A stretch of DNA of 64,000 bases from Perna viridis. Taxonomy: Eukaryota. Of this stretch, positions 54,301 through 63,300 are shown one piece after another. Below the pieces are notes generated by a model, which was not told the DNA's origin, did not search any database, and was given only the letters and a program-made list of their open reading frames with translations. Numbering within the stretch: position 1 is the first letter of the stretch; each line of letters opens with the position of its first letter. The position numbers were made by a program, and so were the translations under genes. The stretch lies in assembly GCA_037379345.1 (NCBI GenBank), contig CM074522.1, positions 868,001 to 932,000 of the forward strand, given 5' to 3'.

Positions 54301-57300
54301 TTGAATGTCTTTTGATTGACATAGAGTTAAGTATGAAATGTGGATGGGTTCTTGATTTTGTACTTCATATTGACTTAAATTTGTATTTAATAAAAGATGT
54401 AGAGAAAGTGATCTATTGTTTAATACTTTTTCTCAAAATCTTCTCCAAAGAATATTTATATGAAATTGCAATCCTCAATCTGAATAACATAATATTTATA
54501 ATATAAATTACAGCATAACATTTTGAAGAAATAATGAAAAATTGACATGTAGAATATTTAATTTCAATTATTCTAATTTTTTTTATTTTTTGGTGAATAT
54601 TTTTAGGTGAGTGTACCTGTAGTAAGTATGGTACAATAGACAACACATGTCATCCTTCGACAAATCGCTGCAGGTGTAAGCCAGGAGTGGGTGGAGCCAA
54701 ATGTGATGCATGTCTTCCAGGATATTGGAATCTGATCAGCGGAAATGGATGTTCATGTGAGTATTTCAAAGTCCTCTTTCATTTTTTTTTTGTTTTTTTG
54801 TTTTATTTTTTTATTTTTTTTTTGTTTTTTTTTGCTAATCTATCTGATATACATTATGTTTACCATTTGAGGCTATAAAATGACCCATTGACACAATCAT
54901 TAGTGAAATAGGAGCTGCATTATGAACAGTTTTTTCTTTGTTCATTAATATAAGTGTTGTGTGAGACAAAACAAACCAGTAATAAGACTTATTTGTGTAA
55001 TTTGGACAAGGAGTAAAGTTTTGTAACTGTGAAGTAATATTGTAAAAATGATGGCATGTTTCTTTATATTAAAAAAAAGGTGTCACCTTTAAGATTTCCA
55101 GACTTGATATTTTACTTGGATATAAACAAAATATGAAATATGAATTATGTATTTGTGAATTTACAACAAAAGCAGAATTGAGAAATCTTATTATCAAGAT
55201 TGAGACAGCTGAATGTATTCCGCCTCGTAGCCAGACAGGTACAGACAGATAGATAACCATCTATGGGCCTCAATCAAAAAACATTTGAAGTTCACTTTTA
55301 TTTGATGAATGCACATAGTGTGTGGTAAAAAGCTGAAAATATACAAAAAAGGATTTTCCTAAATAATTGTCCAATCAAAATTATCATACATTCAAAATAT
55401 CTAAGATATTTATCAGAATCAAAATACAGATAACAAACAATACATCACACAATATTTTAAAAGTGTTATGAAATAAACTTGAATTATCTCCCTTTATGAT
55501 GCAGGGGTAAGATCAATTTTTCAAGCAGGAAAGTCTCCCCCTCAAAGTATCTCAAAATATCTCAAAACTGGTGAAGGGAATGTGGGATGCATAAATAATT
55601 ATGATATATCATATTTTACGTCACAATATCATCAATACTGCAAGTGGAATGAAAACAACTCAAAATACCTATCATAAACTATAAAGGCATGGCTTATCTA
55701 GGCAAAATGTAAGAAAACAACATGTGTGCCAATTGTGTAAAAAATATCATTAATTTCTCTTTTCCCATCAAAAATATGTATGCAACTATAAAATGTAAGC
55801 ATTAAAGATAATAATAAGACTTACATAGTGGTCTGTCATGAAAAGATTGACTCAAAAAATCTCGATGGAAAACGCATTGGTTCAATGCTCTGACTTATGT
55901 GGTTCACATGTAATCTCAAACCCGGAAACAGAAAATGACTCAAAAATGAAAGTAAAAGTACAATATCCAAAATAGAAATCAAGCGTACCGTAGGGTCATG
56001 AAATAGGACATAGAAATAGGTTAATTATTAGAACATCTAAATATATCAAATGTTAGATATAACCAATGAAAATATAACTAAACAATACCTATTGGGACAA
56101 GGGAAAAATATCAAAATTGTAATTGAGAACATTACACTCCCCGTCTGATATGAAAATATTACTACTTAAAATTGAATGCAAAGACACAAAGAAAAATCCC
56201 AAACATATAGTTTACCTAACTATAGTTAATCATAAAAAAAATCAAAAACCATAATACAACAAATGTAAAAAATAAAGTCCATGATTCACAGTTCTCACAA
56301 AGTTCACACCTCATTATGGCTTAAAAGAATAGTTTGTGTGATAGGTCTCACATACACACGAGGTTGACCATCTTTTATTGTCCTTAACAAAACTTTTCGA
56401 ACGTGACTGTCTTTACTTGGAAACACATGCTCGACAATAGCAAGAGGCCAAAAGTTTCTATGTTGTTCATTGTCTTTTAGAATCACAATGTCACCTTCTT
56501 TTATATCGATTTGAGTCTGTTGCCACTTCCTTCTAAGTTGTAATGTTTGCAAATATTGTCGTTGCCACCGAGTCCAAAATTGGTCTGCCATAATTTGAAC
56601 TAGTTTCCACTGTGAAGTATACACATCTCGGATGTTCAGATTGCTAAAGTTTTCAACACATGCATCTGTTTTAGTAGTTAATAGAGAATTAGGTGACAAA
56701 ACATCAGGAAATCCTGCATCAGTTGAAATAGGAATCAACGGACGAGAGTTCATTATGGCTGTTGTCTCTGCCATAAATGTACTTAGAACCTCATGTGTTA
56801 GCTTCTTGTGTTTATTTTCATACAAGATTGAATCAATGATGCGACGTGCTATTCCAATGAGTCTTTCCCAGGAGCCACCCATGTGAGACAAATATGGTGT
56901 GTTCAACCTCCAAACAGTACCTTGATTGTTGAGAAAGGTCTGAACTTCTTTGTCTTCTACACATATTGTAGGGATACCAAGTTCTTTGGCGCCTCCAACA
57001 AAATTTGACCCTCTATCTGAAAAGATTTGTTTCACTTTGCTTCTAATTGAAATGAAACGTCTCAATGCGTTGATAAAGCATGAGGTACTCATATCCTCAA
57101 TGACTTCTATATGAACTGCTCTACTAGAGAGACAACAAAACAAAACAGCCCATCGTTTTGAATTTGAACTGCCACCTCTTGTACGGCGCGTAACTACCTC
57201 CCAAGGTCCAAAACAGTCTATTCCAACATAAGTAAAAGGTGGACAAATTGCCAATCTTGCTTCTGGTAGATCTGACATCTTTTGAATTTTAACTTTGCCT

Positions 57301-60300
57301 CGAAATCTTTTGCACAAAACACATTTTGAAATTTCTGAATATACTATTCGTTTTGCTCCAATAATCCAAAATCCTTCACTTCTGATTTTACCTTCAGTTA
57401 AATGTCGACCTTGATGTCGAATGAGTTCATGACAATGTGAAGCAATAAGTTTGGCTATATAATGTGAACCCAGAACAAGGATAGGGTGTTTCTCTATAAC
57501 GGAGAGAGTTGAATATTTGAGTCTACCACCTACACAAAGAATTCCATGATCATTGAAGAATGGGTCAAGCTTAAGTATGGAACTAGATTTGTGAACAGGT
57601 CTGTTAAGCTTCAAATTCTCAATTTCCTTTTCATACAATTCATTCTGAACTTGTTTGAGAATGAACATTTCTGTTTGTTTCCTAAAATTTGGATCGTTTT
57701 TACTTACAACAACTTTTTGACCATTCCGTTTTGATTTCCATAATTGTATGAACTGTCTCAGATGTGATATTGCGCGTACAAGCGATTTCCATGAAGAAAA
57801 CTTGGAAAAACGATGACTTCCAATTGCTAAGTTTTGTATACTGACTTTCAACGCAACTACTTCCGGACGGATATCTTTATCCTGATTTGGTTCAATTAAG
57901 GGATAGGTTTCTGTTTGTGAATCACTACAGTTTTCAGAGAGTAACCATGCAGGACCTTTAGTCCATCTTTCAACGAGAGTCAATTTTGCTGTGTTTGAAA
58001 ATCTTGTACCGATATCAGCGGTGTTCTTTTCTGATGCAACATAGGACCATTGTGACGGTTTTGAGACTTTATGTATTTTTTCAACACGATTTGAAACATA
58101 AGTGAAGAATCTTCGAGTTGTATTGCAAATATAACCTAAAGTTATTTGACTATCTGTGTAGTAGTGAAATACATCATGAGATAGATTCATATGATCACAA
58201 ATAGCTTCTCCTAGCTCAGTAGCAAGTACAGCACTACATAGTTCCAATCTGGGTATTGTGTGACCCTTTACTGGTGCAAGTTTTGACTTTCCCATAATGA
58301 AACCTAAAAAGCAGTACTATCATTGTCAATTGCTTTCAGATAGACAACTGCAGATATTGCTTGTTCACTCGCATCACAAAAGATGTGGATTTCAGGATTG
58401 TGTACAGACGATATTGAAATAGGAACGATCATGCGTGGGATTTTAAAGCTATCTAACGATTTAAGTGATGCAAGCCACAAGTTCCATTTTTCCTCATGAT
58501 CAGGACTTAGAGGTTCATCCCAATCAGTGCCAGGGGGAATAACTTGACGGAGGAGAATCTTTCCACTAATAGTAACAGGTGCAATGAAACCTAATGGATC
58601 AAACAAACTATTGTTTGTTGATAGCATGCTTCGACGGGTAGCTGGTCTGTCAGTGATATGGTGTTGAAACACAAAACTGTCAGATTGAAGGTTCCAAGAT
58701 AGTCCTAAACTTTGATGAATAGGTAACATGTCAAGACACAGATCTAGATTTTTAAGCTCTTTACCAAGATCATCATTTGGGAAGGCTTTCATAACTTCTA
58801 CACTGTTAGATACGATTTTATGAAATCGGATGTGTCCATTTTGCTTCAATCCGTCCTGCGTTCTTTTCACAAGATCAATTGCGTATTTGGCATTTTTAAC
58901 AGAGGTTAGACCGTCATCAACATAAAAATCATTCGAAACAAAGTTTTTGACGTCATTCTCAGAATTGGAAGTGGCAAGTCGTAAACCATAAGTTGCTATA
59001 GCAGGAGAAGGTGTATTGCCAAATACATGAGACATCATTCGGTACTCAATGAGTGGTTGATTGAAATCATTGTTCTGGTACCAAAAGAATCTCAAATAGT
59101 CTGTATGATTCTCTATTACACGGAAACGGTAAAACATTTGTTCAATATCGCCAGTTATGGCTACTTCATTCAAACGAAAATGCGAAAGAATACCAATCAA
59201 GCTATTGGTAAGATCAGGTCCAGTCATTAAAAGACTGTTTAGTGATACACCCTCATAAACAGCTGATGAATCAAATACACCTCGGATTTCATTCGGTTTC
59301 TTTGGGTGGTACACCCCAAATAAAGGAAGATACCAACATTCTCCAGCAAAGGTAGTTGGTGCTGTTTCTGCTGCACCGCTCTTTAATACTTTATCCATAA
59401 AGGTCATGAACTGATCACGCTTCAAAGGATTTTTATGCAAGTTTCTATTAAGTATCAGTGCTCTTTTGTGGGCTTGTTGGCGATTGTTAGGTACAGGTGG
59501 TTTAGGTTGTTTGAACGGTAGTGGTGCTGTCCAGAAACCTGTTTCATCCTTAACAAGACTACTTTTCATCAGAGAAACAAATTGCTTATCTTCTACAGAA
59601 AGATCAATTTTGTTGTCATGTGGAGTTTTTGCAAATATTTCATCCTGAATATCAAGTTTAGGTTGACTGATTTCAAAGTTGTACTCACATAGTGGAAATG
59701 TTGTATGCCTACCATTGCTGAGAACATTTGTCTTACGAACATTAATAGAAGATGGTGCATGTACCTTACCAAGACAGACTTCTCCAATGACAACCCAACC
59801 AAGTGGGAGTTTCTGTGCAAAAGGTTGACCTTTACCTCCAAGGATTTGATCTTGAACATGGTGGATCTCAGGAATGTCACGCCCTATAAGAAGTTCAACT
59901 TTGACATTAGTATCTAGTTCAGGAAAGTATTGAGCTATTCTACTGAGATGTGAGTGTGCTGAGGCAACGTCAGTTGTTGCTATTTCAGGTAAGTCATTAG
60001 GAATACATTCACATTCAATTACGTCAGGTAGATCAAAAGAGCATTTGTTGCCTACTGAATTGACAACTAACCCGTTGACAAGCCTACCAGTTAAGGTGGA
60101 TTTACCGGAACATGAAGACATATTAAATGTTTCTGATGTACCTACAACACCAAGTTTATCTAATAGATTAGGCGACGCAAGAGATTTATTGCTCTGGTCA
60201 TCTATGGCAGCGTATACTCTAACAGAGTTTTCGGGTGCGGTAACGCAATAAACATCTACGAGAACCGTTTTTCCACATGAACGTCCACCAAGAAGATTTC

Positions 60301-63300
60301 CGCATAATGTAGTACATTTTGTAGAAACAATGTCTTTGACTGACTCCCCGCCATGATTGTTTGAAGTTTCATTGTGTGAATTCAATGACTTATCTATATG
60401 CAGTGCAGTGGGGTGACGTGTATTTCCACAAATTTGACATTTAACAGAAATCGTACAGTTTACAGCTACATGTTCACTCGATTGGCAGCATTTGAAGCAA
60501 ATGTTCTTTTCACGAAGAAATTTCTTACGGTCTTGAAAGGTAAGCTTTCTAAAGCTGTGACAATCATTTAAAGAATGACCCCCTTTATGTAATGGACAGC
60601 GTACTAAACTACTTGAGGTAACGTCTAATCTTCTAGAAACAACAGAAGTACGAGGTTTGGTAGTGCCTACTTGATTAGTGCTGGTGTATGCAAAAGCTGG
60701 ATCATTTCAAATATTACAGGTATCTCTAATGAAGCTGACAAAAACACTGAACGGAGGGAATATAACAGAATGTGATTTTTTGTAAGCTGAAGCAACAGTT
60801 GTCCATTTCTCTTGCAAAAAGTGTGGCAGTTTAGAAATAATAGGAATAACACCAGATGATGAGTAGCGTATTGTGGATTTAACATCGCTGATTCTATCTC
60901 CGTAAGAATGTCTAACAAATCATAGAGTTTTACATGTTCTTTAACAGTGATTGACGGAAACGAGTTAAGCTTTCGTTTTAGGGCACTTTCTATCATTTCG
61001 GGTCTTCCGTATTGTTCAAACAAACGTTCATAAATTCGCTGAAGTCCTTTAACAGGATCATGAGCATTGGCAACACGGATACTTGATGCGAATTTCGAAG
61101 ATTCAGACCCTAACCACTTTACAAGAAGATCTATTTCTTCAAACGCCTAATTCTCGGGTAATACTTTGAAATGAAGCTCGCCAAGATTCATATGACTCAG
61201 GTTTATCGTCAAATTTCACAAATCTCGACAGCAGAAAGTCTTTTCTGAAAATAAGTTTCGAAATATCGGACATGGCATTATTTGTAGTCTAACTTTGTGG
61301 TATTTGACTGTTTTGTACGCTATTCAAGAATGGCAACTGTTTCTGTTGAGAATCCATTTCTACAGTGTTTGTTTTTGGTAACTTGAGATTTTGCACATAT
61401 TCATACGTGTCTTTTTGTTTTGTATCACCAAGATTGGAGAATACATCTTTTTGTTCCTCATCACCTTGTTCTAGAATGCGTGCTTCTGTTTCGGCTGCTG
61501 CTACTTTACTTTCCTGTTTTATTACAATGATATCTGCCTCTAAGGCTGCTTTTTGCTTCAAGAGTTCGCTTTCTTTTTTAATGTATTCTAAGCGTACCTT
61601 TTCGGATTCAGCCCTTGCTCTTTTATGACTTGCTGTAGTACCCGAGGATGATCCACTAATTTCTGACATTCTCTCTACCATATCTAACTTCTTATTCTTG
61701 ATTTCTAAAATTACTTTTCGAAAAGTTTCATTACATCTTTGAAAATTGTCATTATGATCAACCAAATACTGCTGAGATTCACTAGTGTTTGCTCTTTGAA
61801 GGAAACCTTTATATTCCTCTGATCTTCTACAAAAGTTTTTGTACAATGTTTCAAGATCTTTTTGAAATTGTCTTATATTGTCTATTGCATCTAATGATGG
61901 CACTTTCAGAATCAAATTTTCAATTTTGTTCCATAAACTGTCACATTTACCTTCAAAGTCTTCTCTCTGTTCTTCGAACATGGCTTTACCTTTGGCCGTT
62001 TTTCTGCGTAGTCTCTTCTCTGACATAAATCCGGTATCTTTTTACTATTCCGCCTCGTAGCCAGACAGGTACAGACAGATAGATAACCATCTATGGGCCT
62101 CAATCAAAAAACATTTGAAGTTCACTTTTATTTGATGAATGCACATAGTGTGTGGTAAAAAGCTGAAAATATACAAAAAAGGATTTTCCTAAATAATTGT
62201 CCAATCAAAATTATCATACATTCAAAATATCAAAGATATTTATCAGAATCAAAATACAGATAACAAATAATACATCACACAATATTTTAAAGAAAAGTGT
62301 TATGAAATAAACTTGAATTATCTCCCTTTATGATGCAGGGGTAAGATCAATTTTTCAAACAGGAAAGTCTCCCCCTCAAAGTATCTCAAAATATCTCAAA
62401 ACTGGTGAAGGGAATGTGGGATGCATAAATAATTATGATATATCATATTTTACGTCACAATATCATTAATACTGCAAGTGGAATGAAAACAACTCAAAAT
62501 ACCTATCATAAACTATAAAGGCATGGCTTATCTAGGCAAAATGTAAGAAAACAACATGTGTGCCAATTGTGTAAAAAATATCATTAATTTCTCTTTTCTT
62601 ATCAAAAATATGTATGCAACTATAAAATGTAAGCATTAAAGATAATAATAAGACTTACATAGTGGTCTGTCATGAAAAGATTGACTCAAAAAATCTCGAT
62701 GGAAAACGCATTGGTTCAATGGTCTGACTTATGTGGTTCACATGTAATCTCAAACCCGGAAACAGAAAATGACTCAAAAATGAAAGTAAAAGTACAATAT
62801 CCAAAATAGAAATCAAGCGTACCCTAGGGTCATGAAATAGGACATAGGAATAGATTAATTATTAGAACATCTAAATATATCAAATGTTAGATATAACCAA
62901 TGAAAATATAACTAAACAATACCTATTGGGACAAGGGAAAAATATCAAAATTGTAATTGAGAACATTACAGAATGGACCAGTCAGGAGATATTAAAATAT
63001 TTGTATTCAGATTAGAGTCTTGACATGGAGATGATGTTTTTCCTGTGACATTTCTTTTTTTTTGAAAAACAGTTCAGCTTTTTTTATTTTTCTTTAATAC
63101 TTCCAGTATGTGACTGTAACCAACATGGGACACAGAGTCGCCGTATTGATTGTGACCAGATGACAGGACAGTGTTTATGTAGGGAGGGTGTTACGGGACC
63201 CAAATGTGATCGGTGCTTTAATGGCATGCCTGTTGGTGTAAATGGATGTAATTTTGGTAAGAGAAAAAAAAAAAATCATTGCCTTCAGCCTGCTAATTGA

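Follow-up and report, generated by a model that had tools for sequence, protein, structure and literature searches.

How is reverse transcription initiated by an LTR retrotransposon that carries no recognisable tRNA primer-binding site? The question is raised by a Bel/Pao element on the minus strand of a 64,000-nt stretch of Perna viridis contig CM074522.1 (the window; positions 868,001 to 932,000 of assembly GCA_037379345.1), in which only 19 nt separate the 5' LTR from the gag ATG. A first-pass annotation, made from the sequence alone, proposed that the transcript starts within the LTR at 62164 and that its first nucleotides fold back onto the sequence directly after the LTR, as in Tf1, although it allowed that an A/T-rich 8-mer match could be due to chance. 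Here, we find that the 11 bases abutting the 5' LTR pair with a sequence that exists only once an intron inside the LTR has been spliced out, a pattern that holds with compensating changes in 13 Bel/Pao families from molluscs, a fish, a frog and two further assemblies, suggesting that minus-strand synthesis is primed by the element's own spliced LTR RNA (estimated probability 0.75).

The element and its leader

Alignment of the two repeats gave a 5' LTR at 62970..62046 (925 nt, TGTAATG...GGCGGAATA) and a 3' LTR at 56136..55216 (921 nt) with 98.5% identity (all features are given on the minus strand). The element is flanked by the 5-bp target-site duplication CATTC (62971..62975 and 55211-55215), whilst the polypurine tract AGACGGGGAG (56137..56146) abuts the 3' LTR and is conserved across families. 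The LTR termini are TGT...ATA rather than TGT...ACA. A search of the genome with the LTR end plus leader recovered about 10 copies that continue into the leader and about 20 3' or solo LTR copies that stop at GGAATA and whose flanks differ immediately thereafter, fixing the LTR end at 62046 to the base. The roughly 10 full copies were 96-100% identical and invariant at both the leader site and its LTR complement, and hence gave no covariation within the family.

The gag-pol coding region (56304..62026) is a single region that in this copy is broken into four open pieces of 245, 118, 693 and 663 aa in frames 0, 1, 0 and 2. A Pfam search identified the Pao-type peptidase (Peptidase_A17, PF05380; E 3.8e-28 and 2e-08), split by a frameshift between the last two pieces, DUF5641 (E 4.4e-24), a domain that accompanied the Pao peptidase in the relatives found here, and a sub-threshold integrase match (rve, E 1.7e-05, 25.4 bits against a cut-off of 32.6). 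The element is thus Bel/Pao.

The sequence features recorded by the first-pass annotation were confirmed. The leader (62045..62027) is GTAAAAAGATACCGGATTT, followed by the gag ATG at 62026, and contains no TGG, and therefore lacks the 18-nt site complementary to a host tRNA 3' end that is described for the family. TATTTAG, the initiator-like TCAG with its A at 62164 (CAG at 62165-62163), and AATAAA at 62132-62127 are all present, and CTTTTTAC (62162-62155) is the exact reverse complement of GTAAAAAG (62045-62038). However, the tenth pair claimed (A62164-T62036) is not part of the conserved helix. In dinucleotide-shuffled LTRs an 8-mer match occurred anywhere in 5.6% of shuffles, and within the plausible zone in 1.1%, and so for this single element the match would be weak evidence.

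An intron within the LTR and its junction in 13 families

In order to determine whether the complementarity is conserved in related families, a comparison that the annotation had itself suggested, we first searched the same genome with the gag piece and found many divergent Bel/Pao families. Families with only 30-50% gag identity and otherwise unalignable LTRs all keep ATA|GTAAAAAGA at the leader, together with a polypyrimidine tract followed by AG|CTTTTTACC 78-171 nt upstream. For one of these the whole element was assembled from three loci, and its LTR pair and the duplication AGTAT place the LTR end exactly before GTAAAAAG. The open polyprotein of that family was then used to find relatives in oysters, mussels, a limpet, fishes, a frog and others, and DNA around several of these was retrieved, with LTR ends defined by LTR pairs and target duplications. 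In total, the LTR end was fixed to the base by many LTR copies, or by LTR pairs with target-site duplications, in eight families. The first bases after the LTR vary between these families and the LTR motif varies with them, being GTAAAAAA with AG|TTTTTTAC in Saccostrea and Magallana, GTAAAAGA with AG|TCTTTTAC in Ostrea, GTGAAA with AG|TTTCAC in the fish, and GTAAAA with AG|TTTTAC in the frog. In the unspliced sequence the match is only 6-8 nt and the pairing stops at the AG in 12 of 13 families, whilst in the frog it runs one base into it.

Logan contigs of four public runs, whose RNA status is a guess based mainly on their small size, were next examined. In one of them (run X1) a contig joins 62659 directly to 62162, and the 496 bases that it skips (62658..62163) begin with GTAAGT and end with a polypyrimidine tract and CAG. 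The depth of this GT..AG joint is 32, against 44 for the unspliced path; the other three runs show only the unspliced path, and further contigs show read-in and read-through of LTR copies. A 21-nt pattern spanning the junction gave no match, with up to two mismatches, in the 723-Mb genome, so neither an intron-less LTR nor a host gene carries the contiguous sequence. The supposed initiator is therefore a 3' splice site, used in this RNA-like run and conserved in every family, although RNA support rests on one junction contig and contigs cannot show transcript starts or ends. The 3' LTR carries the same donor and acceptor, with the intron at 55824..55333.

After this splice exon 1 ends in ...CCACUAU and is joined to CUUUUUACC. 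The junction UAU|CUUUUUAC is then complementary to GUAAAAAGAUA, the 11 bases of the putative primer-binding site GTAAAAAGATA (62035..62045) that directly abut the LTR. The exon-1 part of the strand is TAT (62659..62661), the last 3 nt before the donor, which pairs after splicing with ATA at 62037-62035, whilst the exon-2 part is CTTTTTAC (62155..62162), which begins immediately after the acceptor AG.

This arrangement makes a prediction for the other families, namely that the leader bases that follow the 6-8-mer should be the reverse complement of the bases just before a 5' splice site in that family's own LTR, and this held in every family. Within this genome the exon-1 end, donor and total pairing were CAATGT|GTGAGT and 14 nt in the C1 family, ACTAT|GTAAGT and 13 nt in the family of locus L047, AAT|GTAAGT and 11 nt in that of L048, and ACGAT|GTAAGT and 13 nt in that of L059, which with the window family make five. 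In other genomes they were TCCACTAT|GTAAGT and 16 nt in Saccostrea, ACACT|GTAAGT and 13 nt in Ostrea, CACACT|GTAAGT and 14 nt in Magallana, GGA|GTAAGT and 11 nt in Patella, CGTCG|GTATGT and 11 nt in the frog, TGTCT|GTAAGT and 11 nt in the fish, CCACGGT|GTAAGT and 15 nt in a Logan assembly, and CATTAT|GTAAGT and 14 nt in an ENA assembly. The pairing thus continues across the junction into the last 3-8 nt of an upstream exon, giving 11-16 bp, and the predicted introns are 227-618 nt. Degenerate copies (loci L046, L052 and L056) have mutated or interrupted sites and were left out of the counts, as were L069, which had no LTR pair, a shrimp protein for which no DNA was obtained, and L077, a more distant assembly (32% identity) with a possible 11-nt junction match at a GTTAGT donor but no 3' LTR to fix the border.

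Over the 13 families, positions 1-11 after the LTR are Watson-Crick paired in 13 of 13, with 2-4 pair types at positions 3, 7, 8, 9, 10 and 11, and pairing falls to 10, 9, 7 and 4 of 13 at positions 12-15. The summed exon-1 matches at strong donors are 49, compared to 5.8 +/- 2.8 for shuffled leaders (maximum 21 in 5000), and leaders swapped between families mostly gave 0-2. A blind scan for the whole configuration (strong donor, AG acceptor, intron 150-700 nt, loop 60-260 nt and at least 11 paired) over both strands of the window (128 kb) returned only the true site, whilst over 522 kb of the other loci retrieved it recovered every true site, added the L059 family and gave three unrelated hits. 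Folding of the spliced 5' RNA gave the helix a mean pair probability of 0.87-1.00 in 11 of 12 families. As a control we used a moth Pao element (28% identity), which has 201-nt LTRs, the duplication CCTTC and a TGG-type site one base after the LTR, and which gave no hit in the blind scan. The method therefore does not invent the pattern, and the trait is confined to one large clade.

How reverse transcription may be primed

Taken together, these data partly support the interpretation in the first-pass annotation: self-priming is likely, and the absence of a tRNA-type site and the complementarity to the element's own LTR RNA both hold, but an RNA start at 62164 with a Tf1-style fold-back of the first 10 nt is not supported. 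We propose instead that transcription starts in the LTR upstream of 62659, that the spliceosome removes 62658-62163, and that the junction pairs with the site abutting U5. A cut after C62155, which pairs with G62045, would leave RNA ending in ...UAUCUUUUUAC with a 3'-OH paired to the first base after the LTR, from which reverse transcriptase would extend into U5; by analogy with Tf1, the element's RNase H would make this cut. In Tf1 and retroviral replication the strand whose 3' end pairs with the first base after U5 is the primer, and plus-strand synthesis copies the primer, so that in this view the site would be rewritten from the primer each cycle, which would explain why it tracks the junction sequence in every family.

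The analysis establishes the complementarity, its exact position at the LTR border, its covariation across 13 families, the consensus splice sites and one spliced contig, whilst that the helix is the priming duplex is inferred from position and covariation only, without an observed cDNA or primer. RNase H cleavage and the transcription start are likewise inferred, as is whether the primer acts on its own molecule or, as a short spliced LTR transcript, on an unspliced genomic RNA. All integrated LTRs keep the intron, and therefore the 3' R that is copied must remain unspliced while the primer is spliced, which favours either differential splicing of one RNA or a primer acting in trans. The model also leaves unexplained how a primer with a long exon 1 would be limited to 11-16 copied bases. 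A more specific and only tentative possibility is that the LTR encodes a dedicated primer RNA, a short transcript that starts in the LTR, is spliced and polyadenylated at the R/U5 border, pairs in trans through its exon junction with unspliced genomic RNA and is cut to prime reverse transcription. The intron would then act as a safety device that splits the primer so that genomic RNA cannot cleave or prime on itself, splicing would gate retrotransposition, and the trait would be ancient since it is shared by mollusc and vertebrate Bel/Pao lineages.

The best surviving alternative, although unlikely, is that the helix is a regulatory or packaging structure of the spliced mRNA that might control gag translation (the start codon lies 8 nt downstream), suppress the polyadenylation site or mark RNA for sorting, the true primer being something else. 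This is in keeping with only complementarity and covariation having been shown. However, in every family the helix ends exactly at the last LTR base, where a primer 3' end must sit, the 19-nt leader is too short and too variable to hold another conserved site and lacks TGG, and a purely structural helix would not need to abut U5 to the base. Less likely still is the original model, in which the transcript starts at 62164 (or 62162) and its first 8-10 nt fold back with no role for splicing. AT-rich, TATA-like motifs do lie about 30 nt upstream of the AG in several families, and the unspliced pairing is exactly 8 nt and begins right after the AG, but this model cannot explain why bases 9-11 (up to 16) of the site match the bases before a consensus donor 227-618 nt upstream in 13 of 13 families. 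In addition, the AG with its polypyrimidine tract is a used acceptor in run X1, and a start at a pyrimidine following AG is atypical, so the TATA/initiator reading of TATTTAG...CAG is at best secondary.

Priming at GTAAAAAGA by a host tRNA, tRNA fragment or other host small RNA (one ending in ...AUCUUUUUAC-3') is very unlikely. Priming by tRNA-Arg or tRNA-Gly is the accepted rule for the family (ICTV profile, PMC8742986), and the first 8-9 nt of the site are shared by several families. However, with no TGG no mature tRNA 3' end can pair, and positions 3 and 7-11 vary between families, including families within one genome, and always match that family's own LTR, which argues against a shared host primer. 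An Rfam search of the region found no match, the window holds no tRNA gene, and an Rfam tRNA search of the genome scored only 63 candidates in a few tandem arrays, from which no sequences were compared with the leader, so this reading is rejected on covariation and the lack of TGG. A chance A/T-rich coincidence is refuted by the 11-bp pairing and covariation in thirteen families and by the specificity of the blind scans.

Comparison with known priming systems and further LTR features

Two solutions to priming, a defining step for LTR elements, are established: host tRNAs and, in the Tf1/sushi group of Ty3/gypsy elements, the 5' end of the element's own RNA (self-priming elements are listed in PMC6934838). 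As in Tf1/Tf2 and that group, the Bel/Pao element has no tRNA site, a site abutting U5 is complementary to the element's own LTR-derived RNA, the core duplex is 11 bp and the loop between the two strands is R-U5. It differs in superfamily, its polyprotein and relatives being Bel/Pao, and in that the complementary strand is not the contiguous first ~11 nt of the transcript but is split by a 227-618-nt spliceosomal intron and exists only in spliced RNA. Compared to canonical Belpaoviridae (PMC8742986) it shares the Pao-type peptidase, DUF5641, a sub-threshold integrase match, LTRs with a 5-bp target duplication, a polypurine tract and a single gag-pol coding region, but has no tRNA site and carries an intron in the LTR. 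Priming of copia-type elements by an internal tRNA fragment, and the 'conserved hairpin site' of GalEa copia elements (PMC6934838), are also non-canonical sites without a tRNA 3'-end complement, but there the partner is a host tRNA half or a local hairpin in the internal region rather than the element's own exon-exon junction. Retroviral and errantiviral leaders also contain splice signals in the 5' untranslated region, but their donor lies downstream of the primer site and serves subgenomic mRNAs, whereas here donor and acceptor both lie inside the LTR, upstream of the site.

A primer site matching an exon-exon junction would be a third solution, and the first non-tRNA priming described for Belpaoviridae. 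It would tie the host spliceosome directly to cDNA initiation, explain why standard annotation tools find no primer site in these elements and provide a simple sequence signature for finding them. Literature searches found no description of self-priming, an LTR intron or a junction-matched site in Bel/Pao, although many subscription papers lay outside these searches and a prior description cannot be excluded; the main Bel/Pao survey (PMC3118150) and the Sinbad paper (PMC554778) do not mention a primer site.

Three further features of the LTR recur in related families. An ETS-like core, TTTCCGGG (62755..62762), is a putative promoter element, with similar cores 81-119 nt upstream of the donor in 9 of 12 families, and the transcription start is inferred, on this basis only, to lie downstream of it, with R running from there to a poly(A) site after AATAAA. 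The AATAAA polyadenylation signal in exon 2 (62127..62132) has an equivalent in all families. Finally, a conserved U5 motif, GGTTATCTATCTGTCTGTACC (62068..62088), is shared with mollusc and frog families.

Primer sites and flanking LTR sequence

In the frog element (locus L066, positions 2789-2835) the site GTAAAACGACGGCC occurs twice, 33 nt apart, after the 5' LTR, and since both copies match the junction over 11 nt this is a tandem duplication of the primer site. In the window element, the sequence around the donor at 62666-62653 (CCACTATGTAAG) resembles the sequence just after the primer 8-mer at 62154-62141 (CCACACACTATGTG), which may reflect an old internal duplication in the LTR. Among copies of related families, that at locus L046 (G000:C2:25789591-25793082, where G000 denotes the genome searched) has about 1.1 kb inserted in its LTR between the acceptor motif and U5, whilst those at loci L052 and L056 are degenerate copies with mutated sites. 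The Pao-type element of the moth Leguminivora (L076:2736-2960) has 201-nt, 100% identical LTRs, the duplication CCTTC and a site TTGGTCCATCGCAGCCG one base after the LTR, and is a canonical tRNA-type control, albeit one for which the matching tRNA was not identified.

LTR termini and a conserved U5 motif

Mollusc families end their LTRs in ...ATA instead of the usual ...ACA, as seen at 62046-62048 of the window and at the LTR ends of loci L045, L063-L065 and L068, whilst the fish, frog and Logan families end in ACA and the start is always TGT. A U5 motif, GGTTA(T/G)CTATCTG(C/T)CTGT, located at 62068-62088 of the window and also found at loci L063, L064, L066 and L075, is conserved from molluscs to a frog, although the rest of the LTR is unalignable. 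An integrase site, a poly(A) downstream element or part of the priming fold are all possible functions for this motif.

LTR copies in host transcripts and tRNA gene arrays

In run X10, one of the four RNA-like runs, a contig at depth 87 with a loose end at 62044 of the window reads from the LTR straight into the flank of another LTR copy (locus L022, G000:C1:4066951), and a second flank (TAATATGAATT...), joined to the LTR start, appears in all four runs. Some LTR copies therefore sit inside well-expressed host transcripts. The genome also contains long tandem arrays of identical-scoring tRNA genes at G000:C6:28992243-29010160, where they are pairs 391 nt apart repeated every ~1091 nt, and at G000:C8:20315829-20356301, where the period is ~682 nt.
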